Assembly (NCBI GenBank): GCA_900088475.1 | Contig: FLMG01000350.1 | Span: 62,001 to 126,000, forward strand | DNA length: 64,000 bases | Direction of reading: 5' to 3' | Source: Hyphochytrium catenoides | Lineage: Eukaryota > Protista > Hyphochytriomycota | In this document: positions 1 through 25,236 of the stretch, one piece after another | Layout of the letters: the number at the start of each line of letters is the position of its first letter | Position numbering within the stretch: the stretch's first letter is position 1 | The notes under the pieces: model-generated | The model's input: the letters and a program-made list of their open reading frames with translations, nothing else | What the model was told of the DNA's origin: nothing | The model's database searches: none | Made by a program: the position numbers and the translations under genes

Positions 1-3
1 TAG

Positions 4-3000
4 GGAGTCTGCTAGTAAGATGTTGGTCTGCCTTTGGGCTAGCAGCTCCCCTGGAAGACACATCTTCCTTGACCCACCGCTAAGCACAGCAGAAAGACTG
101 TTGGACGCCTCGGATATTGGCACTCGCTCAGAGGGATTACGAATTCTGATAGATTTAAGTTCAACCTTCATGCCAGCCCGAAAGGTTCTCGGAGAAAAGC
201 TAGAACTTTTATTGGCTGCCATCCAAGGCGAATCTCTTCAGATGCGATTTCAGGTAAGTGCATCCTTGCCACAGATTATGAGTGAACAGCTCTTCATCCT
301 TCTCTTCAATTTACCAGGGCTGGCGGGGCATTGTCTGCATAGCTGAGTTTGCAGAGACGTTCCTTAAGGAGCGGCTGTCGTTCGAGTTTCAGGTTTCAAA
401 AGTGGGAAGCTACCTTCAGAATGTCTTGAAACTCGACTATCAAACACCTTCAGAAGCAGAATGGGCTAAGGAAAGTGCAATGGCTATCAAGGGGATGCAG
501 CTTTTAGTTCTTCTAGGGCCAAGTAGCCTCAACAAGGCTTTCTTTGAATATCTACGCGTATTGATACTGTCTCTGGTGGAGTGTCTACGGCTCACAAGCC
601 CCCCAAATCAGCCCAGCATGGTCAACCAGAGAGCGATGGCCATCCTGCCACAGTACCTCCGGGCTGTGGCAATGCTTCTGACCTCGTTACCTACTTCCTC
701 TAAGACAAGGGATATGGAGGCCATCTGTGACCTGCTGAACTCAAGTAACATATTGAGTAGTCTTGCTTTCACACTACGTCAATCTCAGGTGGAGAGCTTA
801 CTAATGTCTGTGCTGAAGGTGACGTTTTGGATAGCCAACGTCTCAGATACCTCTCAACTGTCTCCTGACTGTTTACAGTCGCTGATCACCTCCCTCATTG
901 ATATACTTCAAAGATTTTCTCTTACACCAATGGAAGCGCTGTCCCCGATCTCTCAACCTCTAGGTCTAGACATCCCCACCAACGTTAAGGCTCATGAGGA
1001 TAACACGGCTCAATGTACTGATGCTAATCTCGCCTGCATATATATATGCATGGTATTACCTGTGCGAAACGCAAGGTGTAACGGTGAAGCTAGTGCTGTT
1101 CCCAGGCGTCCAGGTGCTTCCGCTGCGCGACCACAGATGAAAGCAATGGATGACCTTCCTAACCCGGACGCCTGTTCAATTACGTCCCTTGGCAGACCTA
1201 TTGTTCAGCCAAAGAATGCACCCACGAATGGCGCTTCATTGCCGACAACGGACCCATCATTACCTAAGAATCCAGCATGGGTACAAGCGGCAAGGTCAGC
1301 GCAAGATGATCTTCACACTAGGGTACTCTCCAGTCCAGCAGGCCACCACCGTGCCGACTGCACTGGCAAATCTAGCTGTCTAGAAGTAGTTGAACTATAC
1401 TCCAAGCATACACTGCGCCTTTATCATCTGGCGCTTCGAGTACTTGCAGTTATTACTGTCTCGTTGGATACCGCTCATCAAGTAGCGGACGATCTCACGG
1501 GAAGTATTCATGTCAGCCGGACCTCTGAAGACCCAAGTGAAGGAAAAAACGCCAAACTATCGGCAAAAGTGATTTTTCAAAACTCAATAGCAGGCCTCAA
1601 CTCCCTGACTGGTTACCTCTACACTGTTCCTTGTTCCCCTCAAAGCAAATCTCCAGCTTCCGAAGAGAAAGGTATCTGGAGGTTGGTCAGGGAGATGCAG
1701 ATGGATGCTTTGTGCATTCTGGCATCACTTCTTTGCAACAACGCCAACAAGATAGCTTTTGTCTCTCCTCAACATCGGCGCTCTCTAAGCAGGAAGGTCT
1801 ACAGCTTTGAGGAGGAGACATTGCAAAAGGCATGGGGCCGATCTAACATTTTCGTTCTACCCCAACTTACTCGTCTCCTCTGCGACAGTAACAACCTGGA
1901 GACACAGGCATTGTCAATGGTCATTTTCGCTTCTCTTTTCTCCTATTCAGTATCGGCTGAGGTCGTCATACGATGGTCAGATGAAGATCCTTGGTTTGCA
2001 GAGATCGTCGAACGACGAAGCTGGTTCGGTAACAGCGAGACCTTTCGAAAGGAGATGTCTACAAGCAGTGCGAGGAAAACGTCAGCACGTCTTATAGAAT
2101 TAGTCATTCTGTTGATAGAGGAGAAAAGGGATGCTCCTCATCTGCGGGAACTCCTCTTTCTGGTGCTAGTAAAGGCGTCCGAATCGTTACCTAACTCTTT
2201 TGAGAAGAACACCTTTTTTTCCTTCCTAGTCGATAGATGTTCGGCACAGTGCTCTACTACGGAAATGTATATGCTGGCCAAGATCACGCGAAACATCTGC
2301 AGGATCAGGGGCTTACGCTTAGCCTTCCTTCGCTTTATCAATAGCGGCTCGGGCCAATTTTTGAGCGAACTCGCCCGAGGATTGCAATATCAAAGTGAGG
2401 CAGTTCAAGGGGCCGTCATGGAAGGCTTATTGGTCCTTGGCCAAGGGAACTTGAGGTGGGACAAGGATACAGCGAAACAAGTGGTCTTCAAATGGATGTA
2501 CAACGCTTTTTCCATGAAGAGGAGGCTCCAACCTCGAAGGCTCTTTCAAGCAAGAGACGTCTCGAACGTGACCAACAGCTCTTCACATTTGCCTGCGGTT
2601 ATAGAGGTGATAATGAGCACTTGCCCGGCGGACCTCCAAGAGGGCATTACTAGGTTGACCCCTTGGGATAATTCTACGGAGTGGCTCTACATAAAGCTTT
2701 TTCACCTTTGGAGTCTACAAACCCAATGTTCATTCAACGTGTTAAAGGGTCGGGATCATGATAATAACAGCGGCCAAATCTCCTTCGATGTCAAGCATAT
2801 TGCGCTGAAGACGCCAGTGGCTTATCTATTGCGCCAATGCCGGAGTCAGGTCATTTCATTGGAGCAGCTCCTCTTGGTCTTTGCATCTTATACGCCTGTC
2901 ATGGCTGCCCAGTTGAAGTTCAAAGACATTCTCAGCTTCGTCCTAAAAGTGGAGGATGAGATGAAGAGCCCAACACTGAACTTATTTCGGCTTGCTTGCC

Positions 3001-6000
3001 TAGGGATCCACCTCTCTAAGCTTCTAAACGGCTCATGCTTGGAGGATTCACCACCATTACCCGCATTTGTCCATATCTTCATGGTAGTGAAGCAGTTTGT
3101 AGACCTTGCTAATCAGAAGCAAGAAAAGATGTTGCTCAGAATAGGCTTTTGGCTAATCGCACTCTATGGGTCAATCTGCCACGCTAATGGAGTGTATAAT
3201 ACGGTAGGAGACGCCTATTCTCTTCCTCAGCCAGACGTGAAGGGAATCCTGACTACCCTAGAAAACGAGTTGAAAGGAGACCTAGATATGAAACTATGCA
3301 ACCGTTATGCCCAAGGCTTAGGGAGCGCCTTGCCGGTTTCATGCAATCAGAACTTTCCATCTCGGCGATCAATGGTGCTGGAAGCTGGAGTGGCTCTAGT
3401 AGAGCTGGTGCGAGCGGACTACGTGAATGATTGGATTAGTTCTCCTGAGATGACGGAGTCTTTGCTTGGATTGGTTTGCTGCCGGTCGTCTGGAATTGAC
3501 GCCCCTAAATGTCTCAGGCTCACACTGAGCCTATTACAACTGCACTTCGAGGTCTGGGGAGTCAAAGTTCAGGCTTGTCCGAAACCTGTATCTGCTTGCC
3601 GGGTCCTTGATTTGGGAATGGAGATTGGTGCAGTTTGGCAGCATCTGGACCACCCACAATGGAGAACACAGCTAGCCGCCATGAGACTCCTCCTTCAGGC
3701 ACTTAAAACAGAGATAACTTGTAACTGTACGATGTCTCCTACACAATTCCTCTCGGATTGGCTCATTAGCCTGGGCTCATTTCGTGATGGCTGGGGCCAC
3801 CTGAGCCTAGAGACACAGTGTTCTTTGGGCAAGCTCAGAGAATCAGCGCTAAATAGTGGAAATATCCTTGATCAACCTGAATTAGTCACACCGTGCGTGT
3901 CGATGGCATTGCTCATGAAGATACCACCATTTTCGGCGCTACCTTCAGGCACACTATATGCCCTGGCTGGATTAGCATCAGTCAAACGGCTTTCTGTGGC
4001 AGAAAAGTTGGAGGTAATGCATGAGCTGATAATCGTTCTTACCGGCTCCATAGAATTTTCTTGCCAGAGCATCTTGTACACGCAGGATGAAGCGTCACTC
4101 AGGGCCCATGAGCTAGGTCCTGGTGGATTTTATAGTCTTGCTATCGTACGTCCCGACGCTCGGAGTATAGCGTTTACCGCAAAGCAAAATGATACCCGGG
4201 TTCTTAGTATAAGCGGTGAAAGTCTGACTGCTGCTCTACCCCCCAACTACCTCTACTTATTCCTGAAAAGCAGCTTTAGCGGCCCAGACTCAACTCAGCG
4301 GATCCAAGGGACTTCCCTGGCGCCTATTGACTATGTACTCCATATCATCAAAGATGCGTTATCCAACCCGAGGCTGGACAACTCAGGCGTCGCTTTGGAA
4401 CTGCTGTCCTTTCTTGCCAAAGAAGAAGTATTTCTCGTCCGGATGCTGACCTACGAAAGACTATTCTCCAGAAGTCTGGCTGGTATATTGGACTTATATA
4501 GTCCCGGATCTGCAGCAAGTTTACATTTTCTGGACTTCGTGCTACACACAGAGGCCGGATACCGGCAACGGAGCTTGTTCGCCAATTTGGGTGTCCCATC
4601 TTTCAGAATCCACATAGGGGAGGAGAGAGCTATTCCCCTACCTATTCTTCTGTTGGCACTTTTCAAGAGGTACTCGGAAGATCCTTGGAGGGCAGTGATA
4701 TTACGAGTACTATGCAAGCTTACTCGTGAGTCTCAAACGTCAACGGTACCGGAACGAAGTCTCATTCCTCCTGAAAAGTGGGACATCGAGGATGTCCGGG
4801 TCATAACCCAGACCTTCCTATCACCAGGGTGCCACACGGAAGTGCGACTGGACGCTGTCTCCATTATGGACAGCCTAGTAACCCACAAGGCGGGTTTTTG
4901 TAGCCCTAAGGTCTCCTCCATTGGAGGATGGAAGGATGATTGGCCAGTCGTGACTGAACCCACCATCAAATCACTTGATCCCACCATCGAATCACTTGAT
5001 GAGAAGCATTTCGGGGCGAGGGAGGAGAGACAAGCTCTAATTTTGGGGTTACTATTCACTCTGGAAGAGGTCCAAGGGGACTCCGCTATATCAGGCACAG
5101 CAGAACGATTATGGTCAAGTGTTGAAATTACGAGAGAAGCTGTTCAGTCAGAAGAGCAAATGATGTCACTCTATTGTGTTCATGTCATCCACATCCTCCA
5201 TAATCTGACTGCAAGTAGGGCCTTTGCGGACCTGTGGTTAGGAGAGGATACTCGTAGATCCCTCCTGTCACCCTTCAGATTGCTGGTCCACCTGAACCGG
5301 AAAGCCTTGATTGACGGAAGCGACGGCACTCCAGCAAAAAGCAGGCTATTGAAGGAAGTAATGACTCTGATTGCTCGCTTCATTGATTGCAGTTTACCGT
5401 TCGAATCACAGTTGAAGACTTCTACCGCTGTCCTAAATGAAGGTCGTCTGGTTCCACTCTTAAATCGTTACATGGCCAAAGGAGGAGAGCATTTTCGCTT
5501 AGCCGCGTTATTGTGTCGTGATATCTACCTGATATCGCGAGAGACACCCGGCCTTGAACCCTCGGACGCAGATGTTACGACCACTCTGCTTATGATCAAG
5601 TCATTGATCTCGGATTTATGTTTGCAGCCGGATTCGGCCACACTGCTCCACCGGGGCGCTTATGCTTTGGCGGTTGCCGAATCGCTACTAGCTACCAGAG
5701 CGAATGGAAAGAGGTTCATAGGCTGTGGGCTCCTTGCACAGCTCTTGTCACTCTTAAGCGCGGTTACCGAGAAGTTAAGATTGTCAGAAGCAGCGGAAAA
5801 AACTGGCCCTTTACATTGCGCATCGGACTTCGTCCGACTTCTTCGTAATCTTTATCGACTTCTCACTTGCCTAGAGACATCCATTCGCGGTGTGGGACCT
5901 TTCTTAGCAAGGGATCCAGGACTGTCAATATGCAGCTGGACAGTACCCTTGTGGCATCTTTCGCAGGATCCCAGCTTGTCGTTCGGCCCTGATCTTCTTT

Positions 6001-9000
6001 GCCTCGTCCACTCTCTGACTCTATATAGCGAGAGCTTCAGACGCAATGTAGGTAGATTAGCCAGCAGCTCTACATCTCCGCTGCTAGTAACCCCCCTACG
6101 GCCCGAAGATGCTTTCCTCTTGCTTCTATTGCGCCTTTTCAGGGACTTATCTGTGCGATCCAAGCCAGGAGCCGATGTAATGGAACTATACGTGTGTGAT
6201 GCTTTTGTCTTGCTGGCCGCTATACCTGCAGTTTCTAGCGCAATCGCAGGTTCTGCTGAAGCCCAATTGTGGGACTTGGTAGCGGTGCTGCGGTCATCTG
6301 GTCGTATTGAACAGCTCGTTAAGCTCCTTCGCAGCTTATCGTCGAACCAAACAATGCGTCAGATGCTAACCTTCTCGAGCCTTCCCTATGGGCGGTTAGG
6401 CCTCGACAAGGAGGAGGGTAAGCCAGCCGGACTTAAGGAGTGTTATCGAATGCTCCTGAATGAGATATTCCAGGACGCAGATGTCGTCAAGCTTTCCAAC
6501 CTCAGCTATCTTCTACTGCAAGGGCTACAATTAACTCCAAGTGAGGTTGTAAAAGACATATTCTCAATTATGGATCCTGTCTCTATGCAACGATTCTGCG
6601 ACACTTTTGAGGGTTTGCAATCAATGCAGGGGACCAACAGCGCTGGAGTTCTAAGTCTTTCCTGTGCATTAGCGTATATGATGGGAAAGAGTATCCTCTA
6701 CTGGAAGAACCGCTTTACCACCAAGCAAATTATGGTGGCAAAGAGTGCTCTTCTCCTCTGTCTGAGATCCTTTGATGGGACTTGTGCCTCAAACCGGGAT
6801 CTTTCGTCCCTGCAATCACTACAAGAGATTGATGCTGAAGCTGTGATAAGAAGCTCCGTTCTGGAGTGTGTAGGGTCAATGATGGAGTTCTGTTCCGACG
6901 ATATCACGCTGGTTAAGCAGCTCATCTCATCGTGGACTTCATGTGTGCCCAAAGGTCTTACTGGGCTTCTTCATCACATACTTGAAGGTAAGGCAGGGTG
7001 CTTCCTATCGGGCTCCCTTACCTTGAAAGCCACCATCTAAGTCACAATCTTTGGCTTTCATTCAGCTTTAGCAGGAAAAAGTCATTCACTTACGTCGGAC
7101 GGAACCTTCTTGGCAGGCCTCAAGAGCATTCTATCATTTCTGTTAGCTTCCACTTCCATTTTGCACACCAAGCAGCGGGATTGCCAGAACTTGTGGCGAC
7201 GCACAGGCCTCCTGGATATACTCACGCAGCTATTACTGAGTGGAATTCTGCCCCAACCGCTGCAGGTAAATTCTTGTCCCTTGAACTTAAATATCTCCAC
7301 GTTCACAGCATCTAATCCCGACGGAAGCTCTTCCATCTTATCAGTTGGGCCTGTGAGGAAAATGGAGATAGCCTTGTTTTGGTGGGGGAGACACAGAATG
7401 GAGCAATTCTCAAGCTCCTTCTGGAGACGATTGAGACCAAACAGGCTGATATGAGCCCGGATCTTAAGGAACACGTGAGGGTTCTAACGGCTTTGGCTTG
7501 CACACCCAAGAATGCATATAGGTGTCAAAAGCTAGGAGTTTGTTCCGTTATTCGCAGAGCTTTCCTTCAAAGCTTGCAGGATGGGGGAGATGTGAGTGTC
7601 GCGTACGAGGTCAGTCCAATTTACAAGGTGAATGGCACATAGAGAACGACCACTCAGAACACCTCCCAGCTGCTGCTACTGTTGTCCTCCCTTGTCCGAA
7701 ACTGTAGCACTCTCGCAGAAGAGCTTCTAATACAGGATAACAACGTTGTGAGACTACTGATAGACCCAGCAAGACCTTATCTACTGCCAATAGGGTGTGA
7801 GACTCTCTGGAGGTGAGCCGTGTCCTTTCGTGAAGCATATGTGATCACTTACAACTAAACTTTTCATCTACAAGCGCGCTACTCAACGTTCAAAGCTTGC
7901 AAAGAGAGAGTTTCGCAAACGATTTCAGGCTAGACGGTGATGAAAACCTAATCATCCGTACCGCCACCCTCATTGTGGCTCATCGAAAGAGTTACAACTC
8001 CTCAATTGACACGTCCCTCAAGACAACCCCAAAAAGAGAGTTCGAGGAAAACTCCGATACCCAAGCGAGTACTTGTCTCTTACTCGAAAGCTTAGGTGGC
8101 ATTCTGTCGTGCCTTTTTACAGCCCCAACCCATTGTTCCAGTTTCCTGGCATTGAAGATATCCTCTACCGTTATAGAGTGCATATACCAGAGCTATGAAG
8201 ACGGCGCAATTGGTGATGTTGGTGTCCACTGGTTGGCCATCCTTGCTTCCCAAAGGTATGGATGCAACTTACACGGAGAGAGGGGAACCAAAGTATAGGC
8301 TTTGGATAATCGTTATCACCACCAGGTTCGCAACCTTGAAGGAAAGTGTTGTTCTCCTCTCAAGTCTCATTGGGCCATTTTTTCGGGATTCCATGGCCTC
8401 ACGTACATCACAACTATGCAGCAAGTGTCTCTCACTCTTCTTTAGTGCTCATGCTGAGATGGTAAGAGGGTCTTCAATCATGTCTTTGCGACAGGTCACT
8501 TATTCTAGAATTTCAAGGTCCCGATAATACTCGGTGAGCTTAGAGAGCCCCCTCCTGACTCTTCGTCTTGGGAATTGTGGCTAGTCAAGAATCTCGTAAG
8601 TCGATTTGAGGCTTCCTCTATGGGAGAGAGAGTTCAAGCTATCTCAGCACTCTGCGCCCTGGTGCGAGCGCACAAGAAGGATTTGTCAGACGCTTTTGAC
8701 ATCGCGAAGAAGGGTATTATATCGGCTTTATCATGTCTTTGCCACATCCCAGGCACCATCTCTGCAGACAATATTCAGAGTAAATTCACCATCTTCCTTC
8801 CCTCAGCTAGCCAAGCGGGTTTTGGTACTTATGGTATGCACCCGAGAGAGTACTTCCATGCGCGTTTGCTGGGTGAGGGGACTCACGACGTAGACGAACG
8901 TTTGGTGTTGTTGGATCTCTACGTGACGCTGGGGAACCAATTGACGGATGCCAATGCAAACTCTCTTTCTAATCAGAGAAGCAGGGCCCATTTGCACGAA

Positions 9001-12000
9001 TTTGCTAGTCTTCTGCTTGCTGCCCTACGGCCCTACTATTCGATGGAGATCGCGGCATTTAAAAATTATGATCCAGTGGCAGGTCCCCACGTTCTGCGCT
9101 CACTTCAGAGACCTCAGGTGTTGTTTTATGATCCCCTCCGCTGGACACTTAGTGCGATAGAAGCCCTATCACGAGGGATCGTCAGCAACGAGTTATCATC
9201 ACAGAAGCTATTGACTGCTGAATACCTCGTTCTGCTAACCGATTATCTCCACACTCACCACCAGGACCTTTGTGCTCAGGTAAGCATCGGATTTGTCGTG
9301 TTCAGCTGAATGCTCAGCCCCGTGCTCACTTCTGTTGGCCTTGCAGTCCATGAAGCTGTTGCAGGTTGGTTGCACCCGGAACAACTTCGTAATAGAGCGT
9401 TTCAGACACATAGTGGTCGGCCGTAGGATTCCCTATGCATTGACTGGGTTTCTTAAGCCTGTGCAAGTGCGCATAAGTCTAGCGGTAAGACCACAGACGT
9501 CGGTTAAAGGGTCGGTACCCCTTATCAACCTAAAAATCTACACTTCAATCACGGTTTCGGAGGAAGGCCGGTGTTTGGCATTGGATCTACTGGAAATAAT
9601 TTGCACTCCAACTTCTTTATTAGCAGAGGTGCGAGATCAAGGACCTGGAGAGTTGTCGGAGACGCTTCGTCTAGTGTCGGCATTGCATCTACATGTTTCT
9701 TCTCTTAGAGTTGGACACAAAGCATCGGGCCCTCAACAAACGAAGATGTTAAGACAACTATCTGATATCATGGGCCACTTCGTACAGGCCCATTATCGAA
9801 AGGTTTCAAGCCTCCAATACCAGCTGCTCCAACATAACCTTGGACTACTTCTCTCTGACCTCCTGCGAGTGCTCGTCTTCAACTCTTTATGCCACGAGCG
9901 AGAACTGGAAGCATTTGTGCTGAGGATATTACAAAGATTATTAGAGCTAGACTCCGAGCTATTCGAGATTGCTCGTACGACCTCCTGGGTAAGGGCTGCA
10001 GAAAGCCGCAATCAAATTACTCCCATGCATCCTGAGCAAGGCTTCATCCATCCAACCACCGTCGCAAGAACTTGGCTAATTCAGCGGCTCAGCCAATCCG
10101 TTTCTTGTGAGTATCCGGCAGTGTCTATCCTCAGCATTCTGGCACACCTGCCTCCGACCTCTCTGCTAGAGATAGAAGGAGAATCCGCAAAGCAAATTGG
10201 GACAGTAACCTATCAACTCGTGCAGACTCTACTTAATGCCGCTTCCAAGTCAGGATGTTCTCATTCGGCTCAGCTGGCTTCATGGCTGATAGTCTTTCTT
10301 CGAAGGGTCCAGAGTTCTACTAGCGAAGGTCTTTGGTTCATAACTGATAGTATGCTCCAAGGTTTAGCCGAGCTCTACCTGCAACCGATATCCAGCCATC
10401 TTGGTCAGATGCCAGGTGTTCCTTTCCATAGTCGTGAGTTTCTGTGCCTGGTCAGGGATACTCTGTCAGGTGCGCCTATGTCTGCCAAGCTTCCTTTTTG
10501 GGCACGATTGCAAACTTATGGCGAAAGGCTCCAGACTGGTGTTGGTACCACTACCAGCTTTGATATTGCGGCTTCTCATCTACTAGAGGATAGGCTATGC
10601 AAGCACCTGTTCCTCAGTCTGAGGTTTCACGCGAACAGGTCAAGCAACGCTATCAAACGGATTTTGAGCCCAGACCTCGATGAGAATCATCTGGAAGGTT
10701 CGGGTGATGACAGATTGTCAAACGCTGCAGAGTCTGCGGTAGTGGTAGTCGAGCTATCAGGGTTTTTGCAAAAGTCGTTGGAGGATCACCATTTTCTAGC
10801 CATTCTGAGGGAAGACAATGTCAATGATCTCCTCTCTTCCTTAGGCTGCTTGAAAGCCACTTATCTCCTGGCGGATCACCAGATAGGGGCGGAAGGAACA
10901 CGTGCAGTGCCAAAAAGCTTGGCCATGTGTCTTAGTGGCCTAAGACGAGCTTTACAGGAATGTTTAGCTTTCGCTAGGCATCTTGCAACAGCCAAGAGTT
11001 CGAGAAACCTACGTGCTTGCATTCTACCATTGCAGGAATTTGAGGTCATCGATATCCTATCGCTGCCATCTGCCATTAGGATGTTTGCTGGTCAATGCTG
11101 TACGCCCAATAGCAAAGGGAAAGATTTTCTTGAACCACTTCATAGCTTTGTGTCCTCCATCCGACGTGCCTCTTGTTTTTCAAAGGTTAGAAGTGCGTGG
11201 TCTGAGTACCACGTTCTCCTTATGCATAAGCTGTTGGCAAAGATCCTCTACACTATGAGCGACAGGGGCCCCCACACCTCGTCTCTTCTCTATTACCTGT
11301 CTCACGTGCTCTACGAGGGTGTCAGGCCGAAAGAGGAGAGCATTATCTCGCGGTGTTTGGACTTTCAGGAACATCCGGAAGTAAAAAGCACCTTTATGGA
11401 AGTTACTATGTGGGGGATACGATGCCTTCAAAGACCCAGCCAAGATCAAACAGTACCCGAGGTGTCAATACATGTGAGTGCTGCTTTAGCTACCGTCCAA
11501 ATAGGTATGAATGCCGTTTGGCTGATGTGTCTGCTTGCGAATTGGACACACGTAGGTGAAAGCAAGAGTCAAAGACGATGCTACGACCCATCTGTCAGAG
11601 GTTGGCGGCATCATAGTGAACAAGCCCTTTTCGGTGCATGATGAAATGGAGTACATACTCAAGCGCCCGTGGATGTTCCCAGTGGAATCCGTTTCGAGAC
11701 TTGGCGCTAAAAAGATCGTCACTCTGGACTTTGTGCTCTCAATGCGAGTAGGGGGCAGACAAGGCTCAAGTGTCGCTCAAGCTGAGATCGAAATTCCTGA
11801 GAGTGTTTCGCCTGAAAAGGCTAGGTCGCACTGTCAGTATTTGGAAACAACTCTTGAGGGGCCCGTGGAAATGGGCTGCAGATGGAAGCTATGGTACACG
11901 ATCACTTTTGGTGACCAATTCCCAACACTTAGTGAAGTATCAGTTACTCCACTATTCAATGGTACCAAGCAAAAGGCAGCTGCAGCTCTTCCACGTAGCC

Positions 12001-15000
12001 TCTTAGGACGTTTAGTTTATACTTCCCTCGCTCTGAAGGACCCATCCTTCCAGCATGATGTCTTTTCGACATTGAAAGAGCTCCTTCATTCACGTCGCAA
12101 CGCAACGGAATTCCTCCAGTTGAAAATCACGGAGATTATCGTTGAGGCCTCAGGGCTCAAAGATTATCACACCCAGACCCAGGTTATCCTCCTCCTTTAT
12201 AAGGTCTCATGTCTGCTCCTTAACGCGCATGACAAGGAGGAAATAGACCAGCCCGCTGCCATTTGCAAGCTTTTTCAAGCCCTCATGTCCTTGGAACGAT
12301 TATGGCTTACGGAACCTTGGGGTAATCACCAACTCAACGATGACAAGGGCTCCTTGCTTCTCATAAGACGCCGTTTGCAAGCCGCACAGGGTCTGGTTCG
12401 AAACGCCACAGCCCTCATCTGCGGCCTTCTACCCGAACCTGAAAGTCAGCTGGACGAGGAAGAAGTGATGGTGAAAGCGCCGGCAAAGGAAGTGCATGAT
12501 TTATTCTCAGCTGTGAAGGTAAGGCGCATGTGAAGGTAAGGCGCATCGACACTTCGTTATGCTCACACATATTTACTCCTATTCTAGGGGATGGTATGGC
12601 ACCGAGAGGGAGCAAGTATGTTGAACGGACCTACCCCATCTGAAGCATCGCTTAAGGGGCACGCTGCGACTATGGCCACACGAATGCTACTTACCCAATT
12701 GGGTTTTGTTTACCGACTATGCATTGTAGCTGAAGTAGGACAGGTTGGCCCATCTGGAAGCAGCTTCGTTGCCTTAAGCCCTGCGGTTCTGTGTCATATA
12801 TCTTCTTACGAGGCTAACTATAGTGAGCAGGATCTCGACGAGACTAAGAGACAGAGAGAGGAAGGCTGCGAGATTATCAGTGGTTGCCTTCTCATGCTTG
12901 CTTGTCATCCGTACTTGCGTGGCGAGCTGGTCTCTCATCCGTCATGGGTGGCCTTAGAGAAATTTGTTATCCTGGCAGTACAGGATGACCTACAGGGAGT
13001 CATAGAGTTTTCAGGAGCCATGCTCCGCCTCATGCAATCTCCATATACGAGGGCTAAAATATGTACTGATGGATTCGTTGTCCTTCTTCTGCTCTTGGCC
13101 CTGACACTAGACAAGGTAAGAATGTTGTCAGCTATGAGTAACGTAGTATCTAACCTTGGCAAACAGCTTGAAAGCCCCAGTTCAAGTGACGTGGTGCATT
13201 GTGGGCCCTTACTTCAGGCTGCCTCTCACTGCTTGGTGTCCATTTTCCTTATTGCGATGGATAACAAAACTTTACCGTTGCTTTTGCAACCACAAACTCT
13301 TAAGAGTGAAAACCAGTGCTTCTTACGGAGACAGTCTAAGAAGTCTCCGTTTCTCTCACTTAAGCTCCACGCGCTTCCATTGGTACTGAGAAGTCTGAAG
13401 GCGCAACATAGTTCTATGTGGCGAAATGTGGCAGCCGGAATAGTTTCTAGGTTAGTAGACTTTTTGACCCTCGATGAGCTTCGTATGCAGATAGATTGTG
13501 GAACCAGTGAACTTGGCACTGACGACATTGAAAAAGCCTTTGAGGTGGGTTTGCAGCGCTGCTTACTACTAAAAAGCGGCAGGTCACCTGCACTTGTCGA
13601 TGACTCTAAGACTGTTTGCATCTGCAGGTGACCCTAATTACCACAGAGTCGGGCTTCAAGAGAGATCTCCAGGTTCTCCAAAGCATCTTCCACACCAACA
13701 TTTTCAGAATGGCTCGATTAGGCAGACTGGACAGTGGAGTTATTGATATTATTCCCCTTCAATGTGTGAGGAACATGCTGCATCAAAGCAGAACCATTTC
13801 AAATGAAGGGCATCAGGGGAGTACTTCAGCCGGGTTACCTCAGAGGGCAAGGAACATGATAGAGGAAATCAATAATTTTCTCCAAGTGTTCGAACATACC
13901 CAGACTAAGTTGCTCCAGCAGAATATGGAGCCTGATTTCCTAGCAGTGCTCAGAGATAGCGAGAGAGCTGTCCGAATCTACTGCGCTGGAACATCAATAT
14001 TCCGTATAATCCAAGAGGCTTACGCTGTGGCTGCAGCTGTCTTGGCAAAGGATACACGGCATGCCCTGGGGTCCAGTTCGGGACCCAGAATGATGTGCGG
14101 TAAGCCTCCAGGTCTTACTGCATGTAACGAGGATAGGTGGGGGGTGCTGACCAATGTGGGCTCGACCTTCGTTTTTGCATCCTTCAAACCAGTGTACTTC
14201 TCTCTTATGGAGGACTTGCTGGTGATGGCTGTCAAAAACCTCACGAATATGGACAGAACGTTCGTGGACAATAGACTTGGACAAGCCTTGAAGCATCTGC
14301 AGGCTGTTTGTCTTAGAATTCCAAATAGTGGCTTCCTTGATCACTTTCAGCGACAGGCGGATGGCATGCTTATCGCTTTGAGAGCCTGCTTTGTGAAGGG
14401 CAGATTCAATGGTGAAGACGAGAGCGGCAAATCGTTGCTACGGAAAGCGGAGGTAAGAACCCCATAAACCCGAGATCTAGTTAGAGCCCAAGGACTAAGT
14501 GCCGTTACATAGGAAGTCTTTGCGGCAGCTCAAGATATTGTCGACGAGGCAATTTTTGAGCCCTTTGAGAGCGTTTACACCCCTAAGATAAAGGACATCT
14601 TTAGAGACCTTTACATATCCGTACAAAAGATTATTGCTCTCTACCTGCTGCCACATGCGGCCGCCGGAAGAGATGGGCAGCCCGTCAAAATGGTGGGTAA
14701 AAAAGTAGAAACAATCATGGAGAACGCCTAGATTATGACTAACATCTTGATCAAGGAGGTGATATTCCCGGAGCAAGACGGGTTAACCAAACGGCTGCCT
14801 GATCTGGAGAGCAGGTTGTTGATGGATACGATCACGCTAGATTCAATGTTGTGTCTGCCTTTCGTCAACATTCCCAATGGCCTAAGGCCACCTCCGCTCT
14901 CTTTATGGGGGGCTATCATGGCACCCGTTCGCCGTGCTAAGCTTTACGGCTACTACTTAGAGCTGAAAGTTTACTCGAAGAGATCTGTGGTCATCAAGCG

Positions 15001-17987
15001 ACCTATCGCACTGAGCGGTCCAGACCAGGGTTCCTATCGAGGTAATCGGAACCAGCCCGGTGTCCTGAGTACCCAAAACCGCCAGTCATTAATCCAGATA
15101 GGCGGGTCGCCACAGCCCAAGGAAGAGTCCACGATCACAGGATTTACCACAAAACAGGAGCTAGACGTACCATCCTTCGTAAAACGAAGCCAAGACATAT
15201 TGGACTCATCTCACCTACGTATCGATCCCTTCTCGACTGAGATGATTCAAAAGCGTCGTATGAAGGCGATGGAGGAGGTCCCGATACTAGTCCGTCAGGC
15301 AGGAATTGCTTCAAGTATTATTTTTTGGTTGCTGACAGTCTTTTTGGTCCTCACGGTTTGGCGAGCTGAAGCCATTCTTGTGGCTCTATGGACCACCATG
15401 AGGTCTCCGTCTAGTGGGATGATCTCGCCAGCTTACCGTCGCGAGTATCGTCGTTACGTGGCATGGGATGAGTTCAAAAAGGCTATGAACGACCTGTTCA
15501 GCATCTGGTGAGATACATATCTTCAATTTGGAGAGGAATTGAGGAGAGGGTCATTACTGGCGTGAAAAATATGACTAGACAGCGGACGCGAGCAAATGTG
15601 AATACTGCAACACGGTGATTTGTTCTCTATTAGAGGGGTATATACGTTGCTAATGATTCTCTCCAGGCTCCCAACTAGTGGGTACCTTGGCCTGCGATGG
15701 TGGAGCAGCCGATGGTATCTGGCGGTGGCGATCGGGGTCCCATTCTTGTTGGTCTTTGGTATTCCCGCCGCTATTGGAGCCAGTTCAGCTTCTAGACTGG
15801 CCGCGAATATGGAAGTTTTGGTCCTATTATATATCTCCTTTTGGTATCTCCTCGTTGTAGTGTCGATCATCAGGCTTAGCAGGAGGGGTCGGGAATATTA
15901 TCACCAGCCTGAGCGTGAAGGAGTCCATCTCTGGCCTCCAAAAAAGTATTATGCCAATCAGGTAAGCCTTAATCTTCTTGCGAATAGGTCTGATTTCTCA
16001 GGGCTGCTATTAGATTGCCCTGATTTCCATCGTCGTGGAACTCATTCAGCAGAACTCTGACTCCCTTAAGGATACGATAAGGTAGGCCTAGCCAATAAAC
16101 AGCGGCAACTGTTTCTGAACGAAGCCATATAGGACCAATAACTCTGAGGTGTATTCGGAGACGTATGGTCCAGTGCTTGTCAGTTTCATTACCTTTTTCC
16201 ATCTGGATGGGCTAGTGCCCACCTCTCTAGCAGACAACCTTATCTATGTCATAGCCACGGTACGTACTTCATGTTATCTCAGATGTTGGACATAGGGTGC
16301 TAATGTACGCGCTCCTGCCAGATAAAGCGTTATGGAGTTATCCTGATGCTCTGCATCTGGTTGTTAATTCTCAAGCTCGCAAACAGATTCAAAACCCTGC
16401 ATGGGGTCAACTCTTTCCTGAGTATCCAGCTGCCGAAACTGATCTGTTCTGCCTTTTTTATGGTACTACAAAGAGTATCCCAGCTTTATCAGAGTAATAT
16501 TAGCTGCTTAAAGGCCTCTACGTGTACAGGGAGTGACGTCAACGTGCTTCTCATTTTTGGCGTGCAATATCTCTGAGGGGAAAGTTCGTCTGCGGATTAA
16601 TCCAGAGGTAGTATGTTGGACGGACGAACATAGCAGGTCTGTTCAATCCCATCTATAAAGGAATATAGCCGAGTGCTCTCTGACCCACACGCATATAGAT
16701 ATGCAATAACGGGACTCTTAGGGATTGGGATTTTTTTTCCGTTAGCCTGCTTAACCTACGGAATGACCCAGGTCAAGAGGGCTGCCCTCCACAAATAGAC
16801 AAGTTGTATCATTGCAGAACAGACCAGCCTCAGCATTTTACCTTTAGGGCTTTACTTCCACTTGGTTTGCTTATTAACTTTGCGTTGCTCTCGGAGTCTC
16901 CTATCACTTCTCGATAAGAAGTGCAGGAATCGCCTACAATACTAGCAAGGTATTACCCGCACTGGTTTGACGATCCTTCTTTTTTTTCTCCTTTGGTCCG
17001 CAGGTACTGTTTCCGGATGAGACCTTGGACATCCGGAGAGCACCAGTAATTGTGATGGCCACACAATTAATGCGTACCTTTATCATGTTGATCTCAACAT
17101 TTTTCCCGGAGCGCGTGGAGTGGATTATAATTAGTGGGGTCATGTCAAACCTTTGTATGACCTTGCTCACAGGATTGCTGCAATCAACGTCGTTTTGGTA
17201 AGTGGTTGAGTTCTTTAAGAGGTCCAGTTGGAGCATATGAGGACCAGCTCTTACCACTAAAAAAATCTAGGACTTTACGGGTAATACAGTCAGCCACCTA
17301 TGCATCTGCGTTTTGGACCGGCCTGTGCACGGTGACAGAGCTTGGGTCAAATGGGAAGGCCAGTAGTTTACTGGAAAGCCGTCGACTGTGGATGGGGTGG
17401 GCCGCAATTTTCGGGGCCGCCTCTGTCCTGGTACTGAGAGGGGTTAAACTTCGCAGCGATGAGGTCAAGCTTGAACTTGGTAAGAGCATCAAGAAGAGCG
17501 TACTTGCCCTTCAGCGCCGGAAACTTAAACTGTCCGAGCAAGAAGTCAATTTTTTGACGAAGGCCAGACAAAGTGCAGAGTTAGTAGAAGAAAGTCGGTG
17601 GCATCACCTGCGTACCTCTGCCACGCACGATTGGTACCCCGAAATCTGGAACATGGACGGGGAGGTTTCATTCGTTGGCAGTAGACCTAAACAAGAGTCT
17701 ACCAAGGGACGTAGTGGCGAGAGCTTTATATCAACGTGGCTTGAAACGCTCCCTTTCTGCTCAGAGAAACATCCATTTTTGAAGAAGTCAAAGAGTCTCA
17801 TCTCTTCTCCTTTGATGGAAAAGCATAACTTTATTGTCACATCCAAGATGATTGTAGATAAGCTGGCGTTAAGCAAATCGAAGCCTAATGCTTTCAAACA
17901 CCAGGTCCGACAACAGGTAATATGAAAACTCTGACATCAATAAAGAAATATTTGTAACAGATGGCTAGTTTCTTCAGCCTGCGCTAG
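4..17987 (+). CDS. Giant multi-exon protein (over 5,000 aa, 5' end probably upstream of the window): Leu-rich helical/ARM-like solenoid, cNMP-binding-like domain, C-terminal multi-pass TM module
   Basis: The + ORFs 20-346, 282-7040, 7110, 7379, 7897, 8195, 8575, 9293, 11556, 12591, 13616, 14735, 15620, 16346 and 17206 join in frame through short GT-AG introns (e.g. 254-317, intron ending 7327, intron ending 7874, 13545-13627, 14693-14731, 15509-15666, 17917-17960). Hydrophobic segments lie at about 15290-17450. The stop is 17987, or 17925 if the last intron is retained. Confidence 0.75.
4959..5000 (+). repeat. 21-bp tandem duplication inside the giant exon (PTIKSLD/PTIESLD)
   Basis: cccaccatcaaatcacttgat followed by cccaccatcgaatcacttgat, one mismatch, in frame. 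Confidence 0.9.
12512..12546 (+). repeat. 17-bp tandem duplication spanning a 5' splice site
   Basis: tgtgaaggtaaggcgca occurs twice, giving AAG|GTAAG donors at 12519 and 12536. Confidence 0.9.
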
Positions 17988-20900
17988 AGATCGGTGTCGG
18001 CAATGAAGTCTAACCCAGACGAGGGAACACAACCAACCAAGGTTGATTTCCCCAGCAGCTGCTCCCTAATCTTGAAGTTAGGTGCGCAGTCTTTGTCCTT
18101 GCCTTCATAATACGTCAAACCTAGGTATCTGAATCACGGTCAGCAGAACATAGGTCTACTCGTTACATGATTGGGGAATGGCGTACCCTCTTTGAGGCAT
18201 GCCGCTTCCTTCTTCCGAATACCAGCTGGCATTAAGTGTCCATCCAGGGATTAATTTGCCACGTTCCCAGCCAAAAAATGAGTCTTGCCAATTTTGTCCC
18301 TTAAGAGTTTTTGGTTTAGACAAGATGTGGAGAGTTGAGGAGAGCACCACTCAGCTGATTCTTACCGGTTCTTCTAAGGCTAAGAGCATCAACAAGCGAG
18401 CAATCTCCCTGTCCTCTCGCTGTGATAGTTCGAGCTCGTAGTACTCCTTTTATGCAACATCATCATGTGACCAAAATAAACGCATATGATCAGGTCAGAA
18501 TATCACCTGCGGCTTCATTGGTGACCAGAAATTGAGCCAGCCTATCCTATGGATGACATTAGCCGTTTCTCTTTCGTCCAGCTCAGCGAGGATCTGACAT
18601 TTCAAGAGTATGAGAGCAGTGAAGGGTATGCTATGGTTACTGACGTACTCGGTCAAAGTTCTCCAAATCAACAATGCGGGAAAAGAGTGTGATGACCGCC
18701 TCAATCCGAGAGCGTTGAAATTCAACTGGCCAACGTCTCAGAAGTGTCACGATCTGCTTTCCAATGTCATTGGTTTGGACTGCTCCTTAGTCTATCGAGG
18801 CAGAATGTGTACCTGGACCGAAGAGACGTTTTTCACAAAGACTTGCTGATGCAGCTCCATCAAAAACCTTGAAGCCGTCCACACCAGAGTCTACGAGCAA
18901 ATACCCAATAAGTCTCAAGGAGGGTCGATGAGGAAAAATGAGCAGCCTACCTCATTTTCTTTGTTAGTTATGCTAACTTGCTTGATGGTGTCAACCATAT
19001 CGTAATGCCCATTGGCACCAGAGGCCCGGAACCGGTGCAGGATCTCAAAAGTCTCTTTAGTTCTCTTTGGCTTATACGTCTCGTATGTTTGCTGGTAGAA
19101 GTCAAAGGGACGTCACAAGCAGTCGATACTTTCCACAAGGCGTAGTACGATAGAGCTACCGGCTCATTAGCTTCAGATCCATCTTCTGCTGTGAAGCGGA
19201 GAAGGAAGCAAGTCCTTAGACCTAATGATTCTGACTTGTCTGTGATGCCATAGGGGTGTAGACCCGATAAACGTAATGCTGAACTCTTACCTCTGCTGCC
19301 GCAAGATTCGTTAAAACTATCCAAACAAAGTGCCCTTATGACGTCCTGGAATCTGTCACCTCAGCTAGTCAGTTCAGGACACTTGCAACTGGTGACTGGT
19401 AAGGCTACTTGCCTGTTCGAGGACATAGCGGTTTCGGGGGAAGGTCTGCTGGTGGAAACATAATCTAACTCTAGGAAGCCCGATGGAGGCAGCTTGACCA
19501 TGAACTCAGTGTTTAGGGTAAGGCGCACCCCATTATAGTATTCATTTCGAAAATTGCTCCAGTTTCCCTGCACGTCTCGAGCTCAATGGCTAATCTAACA
19601 TCTTTTAAAATTCACTGAAGGGTGACGTACAGTTTGACTCAAATCTTGGATCGTGGGATTGGTCCGCTTCCTGTTCTCGACCTCCAGAACATTGGCTTCA
19701 ATTAGCCTTTTTAAAGCTAATCTGTCCATAGGGTCTGAAAGGTCCAGTCGGTAGTGCCCTGTCAGGAACTTTTTAGCAAATATTGGAGGCTTGGTATCGG
19801 TTTGGGTAACTACCGGTCAGCAACCCTACGATGGGACCGTAAGCCTGCCCCAAAAAGTGCTGCAGTCGACGTTTCTCCTTGCCGTCGAGGTTTGAGTTCA
19901 TCAGCAGATGGGCGTGACGGTTGCTCACCATGTAGGGAAGTAGCTTCAACAGTGCATGGACCTAGAAGATATGTTGACGAGTACGGTCTCAACTTTACTT
20001 AAACGACGGTTTTTTTGGCAGGTTTACCTTATCTAGTTCACCTAGAACTTCATCAAGCACTCTCTGCGCCTCGTCAGCTTTAAATAGCAGTTCTCCCATA
20101 ACGGTATCTAGCACTTGAACCTTGTTCTGGAGCTTGTTGAGGTTTTGAATTAACCTCGAGACGCCAGTTTCCGTTATTGTATGGCGACGAGGCTTCAGTT
20201 TTTGTAAGTCTTGCATTTCTATCTTCAGCTTGCCCTTAGGACAGAAAAATTGTCACCCATTGCCTGTGTCTCTCCAGTTAGAGCGATATACTTGTCCTTA
20301 CGTTATCCGGGAGATCGTAGGGGGCCCCTGAGCATTGTTCCACAAGAGGACGTATGGTCCTCTTCCTCTCCGCAAAAATGGTGTGCTTAAGGTACGAATG
20401 TCAGTCCTCGGGCGTTGTCTTGTCCGATATCTGTAGTTAGCCGTACCACGATGTCCACAAACTCGTCGAGCTCCACCTTTCCAGTGTTATTCATGTCATG
20501 ACGAGCAACCAGCTGTTCGGCTTCCCCCATGACTGGCTGTAGACCTAGAAGTCTAGAATAATGAAATTTATCAAGAACTTGCTGCCCTCACGGTCATGGT
20601 GGTTTAACTTCTTACCTCATCCCCTTTTCGAGCTCTGCAGCGGAGATGTCTCCCGAACCATCGACATCCAAGTCCCCAAACAACTTTGACAGGGTCAGAG
20701 CATGAAGCTGCGGCATATTATGCTTAAAAGGAATAACCGGGTGCCAGATGGCAAATATGAAGAGAAGGTACCTTGCCGTCATTCTCCAAAGTACAGATAG
20801 ATGCCCGCATGATTGGGTCACTCTTCCTCACTAACACGACATTTGTAAGTACGCCAGAGGCTGATGTATGCTCAACAGAGCACAGTTCGACACCAGGGCG

Positions 20901-23245
20901 TTGCTCTGCAATCCGAAAGATCTCTCGAGCTACTGCTCTATCGTACGCTGCTGTCATGTCTAAGACATGAGTCCCTTCAGAGAGAGGCAGTTTATTGAGC
21001 GCCTCTAAACTGTACTTTGAACGTAGGGTTAGCCTACCAGCAGGATTCTCGGAGTCGAACTTGTGACTATCATCGGTCCGCCCTCCTAGGTTGCAGTCGG
21101 ATAGATTGACTTCCAGATTTCGTGTCACTGGACCAGCCACATGCTGCAGAAGAGCTTTGCACCCTTTGCTCCCCAGAGGGTTACCTGGGGTTCAGGAAGA
21201 ATTTTCCTTAGTCCAACGGTCTGTTATTCTCTTCTACTGTGACTTTGCGAAAGCTGACCAGCTACCCCAATGTATTCGATCGTCTTATTCCGGTTCAAAC
21301 TGCTCGCAAGGACGTACGCAGCATGAGCGGAGATGTTGTTGTTTCCTAGCTCGAGCCTCAGCAATGCCTTGTTCATTGCCACTGCATCTGCTAGGCTGGA
21401 TGCTCCGGCATCACCAAAACCGTTATATGATAGATTGAGCTGATCAAAAGGAAGAGGTACGAAGAGATTATACATAGGTAGATGACCATGGTTCAGTCGC
21501 TTATCGTCTTTCTACCTCTGTCAAGGTGGCGTTAATCAGCAAGCTCTTTCCAATGTCAGAGGCACTGTTCAGTCGTATAGTATTCCAGCTGATATCCAGC
21601 TTCTTTAGTGTCCTATTCTCAGACAGCATTGACCCGATCGCCTTACCCCCTGTGATAACGGAGGGCTGACCCAAGAGAAAAATAGAGTTATGCGACTTAT
21701 CCGCAAAAAGAACATTGTTTTGTTGCGGGAGAAGTACGTACCATTACGACGTTGAGGCTTTCAGATGTTCCAATCACATTCTTCGATAAGTCAAGCTCGA
21801 GAATCGTAGTGTTTCTTCTCATAGCTTCCATTAGCACTCTGCACTCTCGGTCATCAATATCGGCCATGGAAACGACTAGCTTCTGCAGACGACAGTCTGG
21901 GTTGTTGATAAATGTGGCCAAATTTGCCGCTGCGACCACATCAATCTTGTTTCTGGAGAGGTCCAAGTGTACCTTGAAGGTGTCGGTTAACATAGATAGT
22001 CCATTGGCGAGGCATTACATTAGCAGACTTCAGATATGGTTACCAATTCAGACTTTTGTCTTAACGCAGCGAGCAGAGGAGCAAGGCCTGGCACGAAGAA
22101 GGGATTAGTTTATTGTGGCCAATTCGTCCTCCCAGGCCCTCTGCCTTACCCCTATCGCTGAGCCGGTTGTCTCTAACGTTGACACTCTCTATTGGATTTG
22201 GTAGGTTGGCAACACATTCTGCAAGCATGGAACAAAGGTCGTCGCCCATGCCTTGATGTTGCAGTTGGATGTTCTGGCAGTGTATGAGGTAAGACAGGTA
22301 CTTGATGAGGTGCAGTCCTTACACTTACAGGCATCAAGGACCTTCTAATGATAAGGTGTGCACGCGGAGGCAAACCTCTCTCCACCATTCTTCTCAGGAA
22401 CGTGTGGCGGGGGCTCGCTAGCTCTTCCGCTGTCAGGGGAAGATCGCACCCGCTATCCACCTCATTGATGACCGTTGGTACTTCTTTTGGACCATCGCTC
22501 AGCACTTAAGATCGTGATCAGATCGACATCTGAGAGTTAGTCGGAGTCGTTGTTTCATCGTACTACCTGGAAGGACGACCTTTGCTTTCGGGACACAAGT
22601 ACCTCTGCTCGCATCGGACGCCTTTTGTGCCAATTTATTATAGATACTGGTAAACTCTCGTGCCTGACGAGCATGTCGAGAGTCAAATGGAGCATTCACA
22701 AAAGAAAATTAGGAACTTCAGGAACACCTTTCTCTCGTCAAAGTCAGTTCTCATCACGCAGGGGATGGGGGATACAGCCCTGACATTGTCCGTTAATCGA
22801 TCCAACCGACCTAGACGACAAGGATATCAGTACTAAGTGCTGGTGCTTATTAGAGTCTTAACATCCCGCAAGTAATGGCCATACCTGGCTTTGGGGGTGA
22901 AGGATGGTGCCCACTTCCTCGCATTAAGGCTTGGAAAGCCTCCTCCTCTCGTTCTAAGCTCTTCTTTCGTCGACTAAATAAGCTGTCCACATCTTGGTTT
23001 CCAGCACTTAATGGCCGCTGGAGACTCGCGGATATATCGCAACTATCTCTGACACCATTTGATTGGCTAATTATAGGTGAAGCTGTTGCCATACAAGTGG
23101 TTGGAGTCCATGACCCAGTCAATAAAGCCGGGTTATCGTGGAGGAAGATTTTCTCAGGAGCCTCTGCTGGCAGTAAGCGCTGATCCTTCAAGTGATCTCT
23201 GCCGCTGTTACTACCCTTAGCGTTAGACTTGCTTGGGCTGGCCAT
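17984..23245 (-). CDS. Leucine-rich repeat (RI-like) and EF-hand protein with an extended C-terminal domain, multi-exon
   Basis: LRRs: LDLSRNKID, LELDLSKNVIG, LNLSYNGFGDAGASSLA, LELGNNNIS. EF-hands: DLDVDGSGDISAAEL and HDMNNTGKVELDEF. C-terminal blocks GNWSNFRNE..GFLELDYVST and HRIGWLNFWSPMKP. Start MASPSK at 23245. The last intron 18129-18186 gives ...IADTDL* ending at 17984. Confidence 0.8.
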
Positions 23246-24438
23246 GGTGAATATTGAACTTCAAGCGTGTGTCTGATGTGGCTCCGTCAGCCTCGAAATT
23301 TTTGTCCCCGAGCCTACCACCCTTACGATCAGTCGGCGGCGGTTAAAGTATGGACTCATCAGCTTGTTCAGGAGCAATCCCTCTGTCCAGTCGCCAGCCA
23401 CTGTAAACCAGCTGCTAGCGGCGGCAGCAGGAGACACTGCACATGAAAAGCTTCTTGTTTGGGCCGCATACACGACGCTAAAAGAGTTTGTATCGGCATA
23501 TACGCCGCGCCGAAGATACTGTGAGTGAATGTAAGGGTCAGAAGAGTTGTTCCGGCAGCCAGTTGAAAGGTCAGTCTTTGTGTTTTTCCTTCTCCGCTGC
23601 TCCCATCATCGCGTCTAACGAGCCTTTTTAAAAGAAGCGGCGGCGGAACAGTACTACCGTTTTATACCTTTTACTTACCGTCGCAGTTATCATCCCAGTA
23701 ATAGAAGATGTAACGTCTTCAAACAATGACATCTCGTCTCCCTCTTACCACAAAGATTACTTAGCTAACACGAGCACTCTGTCTCCTCTGCTGGAGCGAA
23801 TGTTTGGAGTACTGTAACGACTCGACTCATCCTTCCTTGTGGTGAAGAACATGATGTAGGTAGTACATGATCGCCCACATACCACAATAGTCACGGAAGA
23901 GCAAGGTGCGAGAGGATGAAGCGACCTCGGGAACCTCCTCCTTCCTCTCGTCCCGTTCCTTCCATCATCGCAGCTTTCCCACATCTTCATTTTTGGGTTG
24001 ACCTGGGCTTTCCACAGCCTCATTATTATACTAGTAAAGCGTCTCAAATAACTATCATGCTATTGCTTCCATTAGTGAAAGATCGACTTCCCTCAAAGGT
24101 GTAGTTGGTGCGGTGGTGACGGATACTACTGAGCCCTTCTTCTGAAGAATTACGAGCTCAAAGATCGACGGCGGCGTGCCGCTTCGCTTTCACTCGCCTA
24201 CTACGAAACTCTCGCATCGGAGGAGGACGTTTGACGTCACTATTGCTACCTCTTCGCCGGAGGACGTTGTTTGAGGGCACTGAAGAAGCGACTCCTTAGT
24301 CGGAGGATAGCTTTACTACTACTCTGATTAAGATGTCCTTATAAAAGCAACCCACTAAACGGGCACTACTAAGATAATGAGGAGGTTGTATTCCTAGTCT
24401 GAGCTTACTAACTATTCTATTGAATTGATCAACCATGT

Positions 24439-25236
24439 AAGGAAGACGAGTGTGACGGGCAAGGAAAACCTATGACGAGCATTAATCATTAATAGAGAGT
24501 CTAGAGGACAACGTGTTTGCGTAATAGCTTCTCCTTACACTTTCTACCCTTCTAAGTAATAACCTTTCCACGTCCTCTGAACAGAAGGGGCGGGAAACAA
24601 AACGAAGAAGGAGGGTGTGCTCTCTGTTTTGCCAAAAGTCTATGAGAAAATCGTCCGCATGAGTAACCATAGCCTCTGGTTCTCAAGAAGCATCGTGGTC
24701 CGGGTAACCCTTCCTCTTAAGTATTGACGACGTCCTTTGAACAAACGCGTATCTCTCTAATATAGCTTCTACCTCGAACTCCTCATGTCCATCGACTATT
24801 TATATCTGGCGGAGGCCTATCGTGTTTGTCTGTGACTCCATAGGAGAAGATGGTCCTTCAACTGCGAAACATGAAAGACAGGGTGGTGACTGTTTGTACG
24901 TAACCGGTAGAGTTAGACGGTTTTATGCTGTAGCAGAGATCAATCGTTATATCGGAAAGTGGCCCTGATCCGTTCGTAATGAGAAGTCAGAGCAGAGGTT
25001 TTGATCAGGACCATATCACCAACCTTAAAGCTGACATCTTTGCGATGCTCGTTGGCCTGTAGTGCTTGAGCTTGTTGTTGTGCCCGGCGAAGATTGTCCC
25101 CGGGGGCTCATTGCAGTCCAGTCTCAATGGCTCAGCTACGAAATGGAAGGAAGATGAGTGTGACGGGCAACGAAAAGTTATGAACGAGCATGAATCATTT
25201 AATAGGGAGTCTAGATGACAACGTGGGCTTGCGTAA
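24439..25236 (+). repeat. Diverged direct repeat pair of about 87 bp (24439-24524 and 25147-25236)
   Basis: aaggaagaYgagtgtgacgggcaa..tatga..gagcat..aatcatt.aatag.gagtctaga.gacaacgtg..ttgcgtaa is seen twice, about 710 bp apart. Confidence 0.8.

Follow-up and report, generated by a model that had tools for sequence, protein, structure and literature searches.

A predicted giant helical protein with a C-terminal polytopic membrane module in Hyphochytrium catenoides: a candidate orphan gene

Introduction

Ryanodine and IP3 receptors are built from thousands of cytosolic, mainly alpha-solenoid residues, which are followed by a C-terminal polytopic module of six transmembrane (TM) helices and a short charged helical tail. 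Giant alpha-solenoid scaffolds, including rotatin, MEI1/PRD1, RICTOR, and huntingtin-like HEAT/ARM proteins, are also Leu-rich, helix-rich, and non-catalytic, and they are soluble proteins of 1,000-3,000 aa. Cyclic-nucleotide-binding proteins of the CAP/Crp type carry a cNMP-binding domain, an eight-stranded beta-barrel of approximately 90 residues with a phosphate-binding cassette. As a rule, proteins of giant size are old and conserved, or else they consist of repeats.

The hyphochytrid lineage lies near the oomycete pathogens and is the source of the kalium channelrhodopsins (KCRs). A locus of Hyphochytrium catenoides, a hyphochytrid and stramenopile protist, is predicted to encode a protein of approximately 7,000 aa that resembles each of these systems in part. 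It shares with the ryanodine and IP3 receptors the general plan of a long, predicted helical cytosolic part, a C-terminal polytopic module, and a charged helical tail, but its separately searched exons gave no RYDR_ITPR, RIH_assoc, MIR, SPRY, or Ion_trans signal and no pore motif, and it probably has 8-10 TM helices instead of six. Its Leu-rich, predicted helix-rich, and non-catalytic character is that of the giant scaffolds; in contrast to these, it is two to three times longer and ends in a membrane module. With the CAP/Crp-type proteins it shares only a short motif near position 4128, and it has neither a profile match nor a beta barrel in a low-confidence model. The locus is interpreted here, with modest confidence, as one real, lineage-restricted nuclear gene for a helical and polytopic protein without a cNMP-binding domain.

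Sequence Data and Scope

The window is a stretch of 64,000 nt (positions 62001-126000 of contig FLMG01000350.1, here C3462; assembly GCA_900088475.1), and positions without a prefix refer to it. The segment L003 corresponds to C3462:54001-63000, and searches across contigs covered the 61-Mb genome assembly (4,759 contigs). The DNA is eukaryotic, with approximately 48% G+C and short spliceosomal introns. Exon pieces of the gene were analyzed separately and their lengths were added. A dynamic-programming exon model over-split exons and served as a guide only. The homology search without length restriction covered positions 3429-6986 only.

Extent and Exon Structure of the Gene

An ORF scan identified a giant + strand open frame at 282-7037 (2,252 codons, 6.76 kb), in agreement with the ORF of approximately 6.7 kb described in the initial annotation. 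The base composition gives an estimated probability of approximately e^-115 for an open frame of this length. Other stop-free exons comprised 709, 592, 321, and 319 codons. The giant exon itself (318-6987, + strand) spans approximately 6.67 kb and 2,223 codons, is Leu-rich and predicted to be helical, and is bordered by introns at 254-317 and 6988-7065/7071. The first of these introns is 64 nt long and opens with a GTAAGT donor at 254 that scores 13.0 bits. It is preceded by the 3' part of an exon (2-253, + strand) that starts upstream of the window (whole exon at L003:7732-8253), with an open frame that is continuous with L003:7732-8343. Short canonical GT-AG introns join the giant open exon to approximately 15 more + strand exons, and the + strand open segments form a chain that reaches 17922.

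Nine canonical introns (254-317, 6988-7065, 8462-8508, 9280-9346, 11474-11555, 12519-12587, 13545-13627, 14453-14512, and 15508-15666) were 47-159 nt long and preserved the reading frame. Donors at the ends of the open segments scored 7-13 bits, with the sequences GTAAGT, GTAAGG, GTGAGT, and similar. From position 2 to 15961, all gaps between coding segments measured 40-190 nt, which is the size of the confident introns. Downstream of the giant exon, a run of approximately five small + strand exons (approximately 7066-7265, 7397-7627, 7670-7812, 7929-8255, and 8326-8461) had weaker splice sites; its GT-AG introns of 42-131 nt were frame-preserving, with donors of 7.2-8.1 bits and mostly weak acceptors, and every gap within 7066-8461 was too short for an intergenic region. 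Weak acceptors were found at several junctions (7266-8325, 14693-147xx, and 15962-17003). The small-exon run is followed by six well-supported + strand exons (8509-9279, 9347-11473, 11556-12518, 12588-13544, 13628-14452, and 14513-14692), which are Leu-rich and predicted to be helical and are joined by canonical introns of 47-83 nt.

Same-strand exons extend from approximately L003:1735, which lies 6.3 kb ahead of the first base of the window. In L003, the + strand open segments run from approximately 1735 to 8343, with strong donors at 2966, 3624, 4830, 7172, and 8254, and the likely start of the gene is near C3462:55,700. The upstream coding part contains an assembly gap of 63 N (L003:5374-5436, or C3462:59374-59436), which hides several residues and may also conceal a splice site. 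Exon lengths totaled approximately 6,970 aa, including approximately 5,160 aa in the window and approximately 1,800 aa upstream. The gene is estimated to span about 24 kb, with at least 25 exons and a product of about 7,000 aa, and the splice-site logic suggests that all of its parts belong to one transcript. Approximately 15 + strand ORFs had initially been proposed to splice into a gene of approximately 18 kb; the chain to 17922 and its canonical introns were recovered, but the gene is approximately 24 kb long and begins upstream of the window. The product, put at over 5,000 aa in the same proposal, was corrected to approximately 7,000 aa.

In-frame Stops and the Unity of the Gene

Three lone in-frame stops split same-frame open segments, at 14729-14731 in the window and at L003:2986-2988 and L003:4322-4324. 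The TAG in the window separates the + strand open segments 14513-14728 and 14732-15508 and sits at the junction of the helical part and the membrane part. A 7.6-bit donor (GTGGGT) is located 36 nt upstream of it, at 14693, and the acceptors at 14731, 14755, 14758, 14773, and 14809 give introns with lengths that are multiples of three (63-117 nt for those past the TAG). The candidate intron from 14693 contains a CTAAC branch-like motif, and its acceptors are weak (-0.6 to 1.0 bits). Of the upstream stops, that at L003:2986 has a GTAAGT donor ahead of it at 2966, and that at L003:4322 is preceded by weak donor candidates only. These sites suggest that the three stops are intronic, each in an intron of multiple-of-three length, which is probable for the TAG at 14729; readthrough, haplotype differences, or assembly errors may be an alternative source of the stops.

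The position of this TAG bears directly on whether the chain is one gene. Two or more adjacent same-strand genes may have been merged in the model, which seems unlikely: a soluble helical protein would end at the TAG, and a membrane protein of approximately 500-700 aa would start from an ATG at 14735, or the upstream L003 exons or the 3' ORF at 17161-17922 would represent separate genes. A merger would account for an ATG that follows the TAG after three bases, for the weak acceptors of the intron that would remove this stop, for a 233-nt gap with weak splice candidates at L003:7499-7732, and for the lack of strong donors between 16322 and 17003. However, a terminator, a promoter, and UTRs would not fit into the 3 nt between the stop and the start, and the donor ahead of the TAG can be combined with several frame-keeping acceptors downstream of it. 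The intron-sized gaps from 2 to 15961 and the uniform composition of the exon pieces also argue for a single gene.

The same stops could be read as signs of decay, in a former giant gene that is now non-functional, or as an assembly artefact. This explanation is highly improbable, although it is consistent with the three lone stops between same-frame open segments, with the 63-N gap in the upstream coding region, and with the lack of relatives that could reveal purifying selection. Stop-free exons of 2,252, 709, 592, 321, and 319 codons are unexpected in a decaying gene, and two of the three stops are closely preceded by a strong donor (at 14693 and at L003:2966), with weak ones only before the stop at L003:4322.

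Membrane Module

Under the favored model of a single gene, the helical part is connected to the membrane part by a + strand linker exon (14774-15507) that ends in the first TM helix (15302-15358). The linker/TM1 exon occurs as a single copy in the genome. From its donor at 15508, an intron of 159 nt that contains a CTAAT branch-like motif leads to a + strand exon (15667-15961) that carries TM helices 2 and 3 (15719-15775 and 15815-15871). The three segments are strong, with Kyte-Doolittle peaks of 2.3-2.7 (2.34 at 15302, 2.44 at 15719, and 2.69 at 15815), and the two exons that contain them (helices at 15302-15871) are tied to the rest of the gene by good introns. These findings are in line with the C-terminal multi-TM module of the initial annotation. 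A multi-TM C-terminus holds even in the most conservative model, with a stop at 16058, because this model still has three TM helices.

Beyond this point, further + strand exons of the membrane module and a basic C-terminal tail are probable (15962-17925). A 10.3-bit donor is located at 15962, and the exon structure from there to 17003 is uncertain. Candidate exons lie at 16133/16149-16259, 16322-16462, 17004-17197, and 17271-17479, followed by a stretch to the stop at 17923-17925; strong + strand sites in this region include the donors at 16260, 17198, and 17480 and the acceptors at 16321 and 17270. A 254-codon + strand open frame occupies 17161-17922. More hydrophobic segments were detected by the Kyte-Doolittle scale at 16334, 16412, 17046, and 17124. 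The predicted exons after 15962 suggest five to seven further hydrophobic helices and a basic tail of approximately 150 residues. Three TM helices can be regarded as certain within the predicted gene, and the total is probably eight to ten.

Codon usage on both strands of 15900-18100 weakly favored the + strand. The minus strand carries strong donor-like sites at 17615, 17254, and 17077 (7.3-10.4 bits), where the + strand has the 3' exons of the giant gene. A minus-strand gene over 16000-17900 was considered and disfavored, as the minus-strand ORFs there are short, change frame, and gave no match in Pfam; the strong minus-strand donors would still be compatible with such a gene. An antisense or overlapping transcript may run on the minus strand at 17077-17615.

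Helical Part and Fold

Leu accounts for 14-15% of the residues in the exon pieces, and the composition is even across the pieces. A single-sequence AlphaFold model of 3429-6986 contained 57 helices and two 4-residue strands at a low-confidence mean pLDDT of 40. For the first 177 upstream residues, the corresponding model hinted at a small beta-rich module with a pLDDT of 43, and a small beta-rich N-terminal module is possible. At pLDDT values of 40 and 43, the fold is not established by these models. In the ESM Atlas, the nearest neighbors of the giant exon were the alpha-solenoid families MEI1/PRD1, rotatin, and RICTOR_N (score 0.94), with 151-156 of 256 features shared, compared with 170 typical of true family members. 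Self-BLAST of pieces of the giant protein revealed no internal repeats, and no meaningful P-loop, kinase, EF-hand, zinc-finger, or pore motif was detected.

Together, the models are consistent with a first part of approximately 6,400 residues that would be non-repetitive, Leu-rich, mainly alpha-helical, and solenoid-like. The helices had initially been described as ARM/HEAT-like. The Leu content and the weak helix-rich model fit the helical half of this description, but no HEAT or ARM Pfam profile matched the exon reading frames at E<=10; the likeness to ARM/HEAT is not demonstrated and comes from the helical content and from the language-model similarity to MEI1/rotatin-type solenoids. The exon chain and the TM helices fit the earlier proposal that a very large helical part is joined to a polytopic membrane part.

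Search for Relatives and Known Families

Nothing credible was found in Pfam with approximately 30 exon reading frames at E<=10, where the noise consisted of DUF6527, FRG1, LacAB_rpiB, Fry_C, and BH3, all at E>0.05. A phmmer search of seven pieces against PDB returned nothing or noise, and exon 9347-11473 had no match. In the HMMER search, a 1,186-aa piece (3429-6986) was compared with 1.84 billion representatives without a length filter, and there were 0 matches at E<=0.001. Word-index searches were empty for the 2,252-aa exon, within a coverage of proteins of approximately 1,240-3,940 aa, and for the linker/TM1 exon. A scan of JGI metagenomes for the giant gene was empty, the N-terminal 150 aa had no usable match in the ESM Atlas, and the giant gene had no paralogue in its own genome, where it is single copy. 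The membrane module had no Pfam match when it was searched exon by exon, which is an insensitive way to search small exons. No search returned a self match, and the databases seem to lack the proteins of this genome. The term orphan may merely mean that no close relative has been sampled, because no other hyphochytrid sequence appears to be present in the searched databases. The initial view that the architecture is not recognizable was borne out, as no family, solved structure, or relative was detected by the piecewise Pfam, PDB, and homology searches.

Membership in the rotatin or MEI1 families was rejected; RTTN_N and MEI1_N/TPR_PRD1 had no Pfam match on any exon, and the shared ESM features (151-156 of 256) are below 170. 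Alternatively, the protein could come from a known family of giant membrane proteins and have diverged to an extreme degree, with a channel of the ryanodine/IP3-receptor type as the obvious candidate, or it could belong to a known transporter or channel family hidden by small exons. This appears quite unlikely, although the plan is the same, from thousands of helical cytosolic residues to a polytopic C-terminal module and a charged helical tail, and although the exon-by-exon search of the membrane module is insensitive. RYDR_ITPR (PF01365) and RIH_assoc (PF08454) gave nothing on C3462 at E<=10, but matched two ordinary loci of the IP3/ryanodine-receptor type at C3062:76184-84644 and C4580:13480-22095; with matches solely on these two contigs, membership of the giant gene in this family is disfavored. 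Furthermore, Ion_trans, MIR, and all other Pfam families had no match on any exon, and the GG[IV]GD pore motif was absent, in a module that is split into small exons and was searched piecewise. There was also no PDB sequence match, although ryanodine and IP3 receptors are represented in PDB.

Potential Function and Meaning

A non-repetitive protein of approximately 7,000 residues without a detectable relative is unusual. If the preferred reading of one expressed gene is correct, this gene would define a new family of proteins with a new architecture, in which an enormous helical arm is attached to a polytopic anchor. The novelty would lie at the level of both family and architecture, as judged from a predicted gene model and from searches without a match, in a lineage that has been sampled poorly. 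In this arrangement, the C-terminal polytopic module would anchor the protein in the plasma membrane or an internal membrane, the helical arm of approximately 6,400 residues would serve as a cytosolic interaction platform or tether, and cyclic-nucleotide sensing would play no part.

Provided that the gene is real and single, a scaffold or tether is the function that would be named first from the architecture, at slightly under an even chance; a solenoid-regulated pore or transporter would be the second option and is clearly less probable, with other functions making up the remainder. A more far-reaching proposal, which has a slim likelihood, is that the gene represents an unseen class of giant membrane proteins limited to hyphochytrids or their unsampled relatives, in which a new pore or transport module of approximately 10 helices would be controlled by a non-repetitive cytosolic helical arm of approximately 6,400 residues and would follow a logic like that of the ryanodine receptors, evolved independently. 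If expressed from one gene, the giant protein could point to a hitherto unrecognized organelle tether or to a channel of new design. For now, it is of use as a candidate for structure prediction and for validation by transcripts, and it falls short of an established discovery.

Genomic Neighborhood

Upstream of the giant gene lie a + strand gene at L002:5779-8400, which is taken from its translation only to encode an XPD/ERCC2-like helicase, and a minus-strand gene at L002:185-5000, presumably that of the RNA polymerase I largest subunit and likewise recognized from its translation only. A GPCR-INPP gene is located downstream. The giant gene is not part of a viral island, because these neighbors (XPD-like helicase, Pol I, and GPCR-INPP) are ordinary eukaryotic genes. 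Downstream of the giant gene, at 18000-27000, neither strand had an ORF longer than 144 aa, and no gene was obvious; this region may be poor in genes or contain genes with small exons.

Putative Cyclic-Nucleotide Site

The initial annotation had also placed a cNMP-like, nucleotide-sensing domain in the giant protein, and this part of the description did not stand. In hmmscan, PF00027 had no match at E<=10 in 3600-4499 or in 3813-4331, and the site at 3915-4230 had no match to PDB chains at E<=10. AlphaFold modeled this site (residues 163-267 of the piece) as helices and coil without a beta barrel, at a pLDDT of approximately 30-40. The sole likeness to a cNMP-binding domain was a loose motif at approximately 4128 that resembles a phosphate-binding cassette. 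A cNMP-binding domain at 3915-4230 is not supported. A six-frame search of the genome with PF00027 recovered 77 sites, the weakest at E=0.4, and none of these was on C3462. The presence of at least 77 six-frame matches suggests that the genome encodes a rich repertoire of cyclic-nucleotide signaling proteins. These matches are partly arranged in tandem, as at C8:22986-24988 and C4384:250594-252037.
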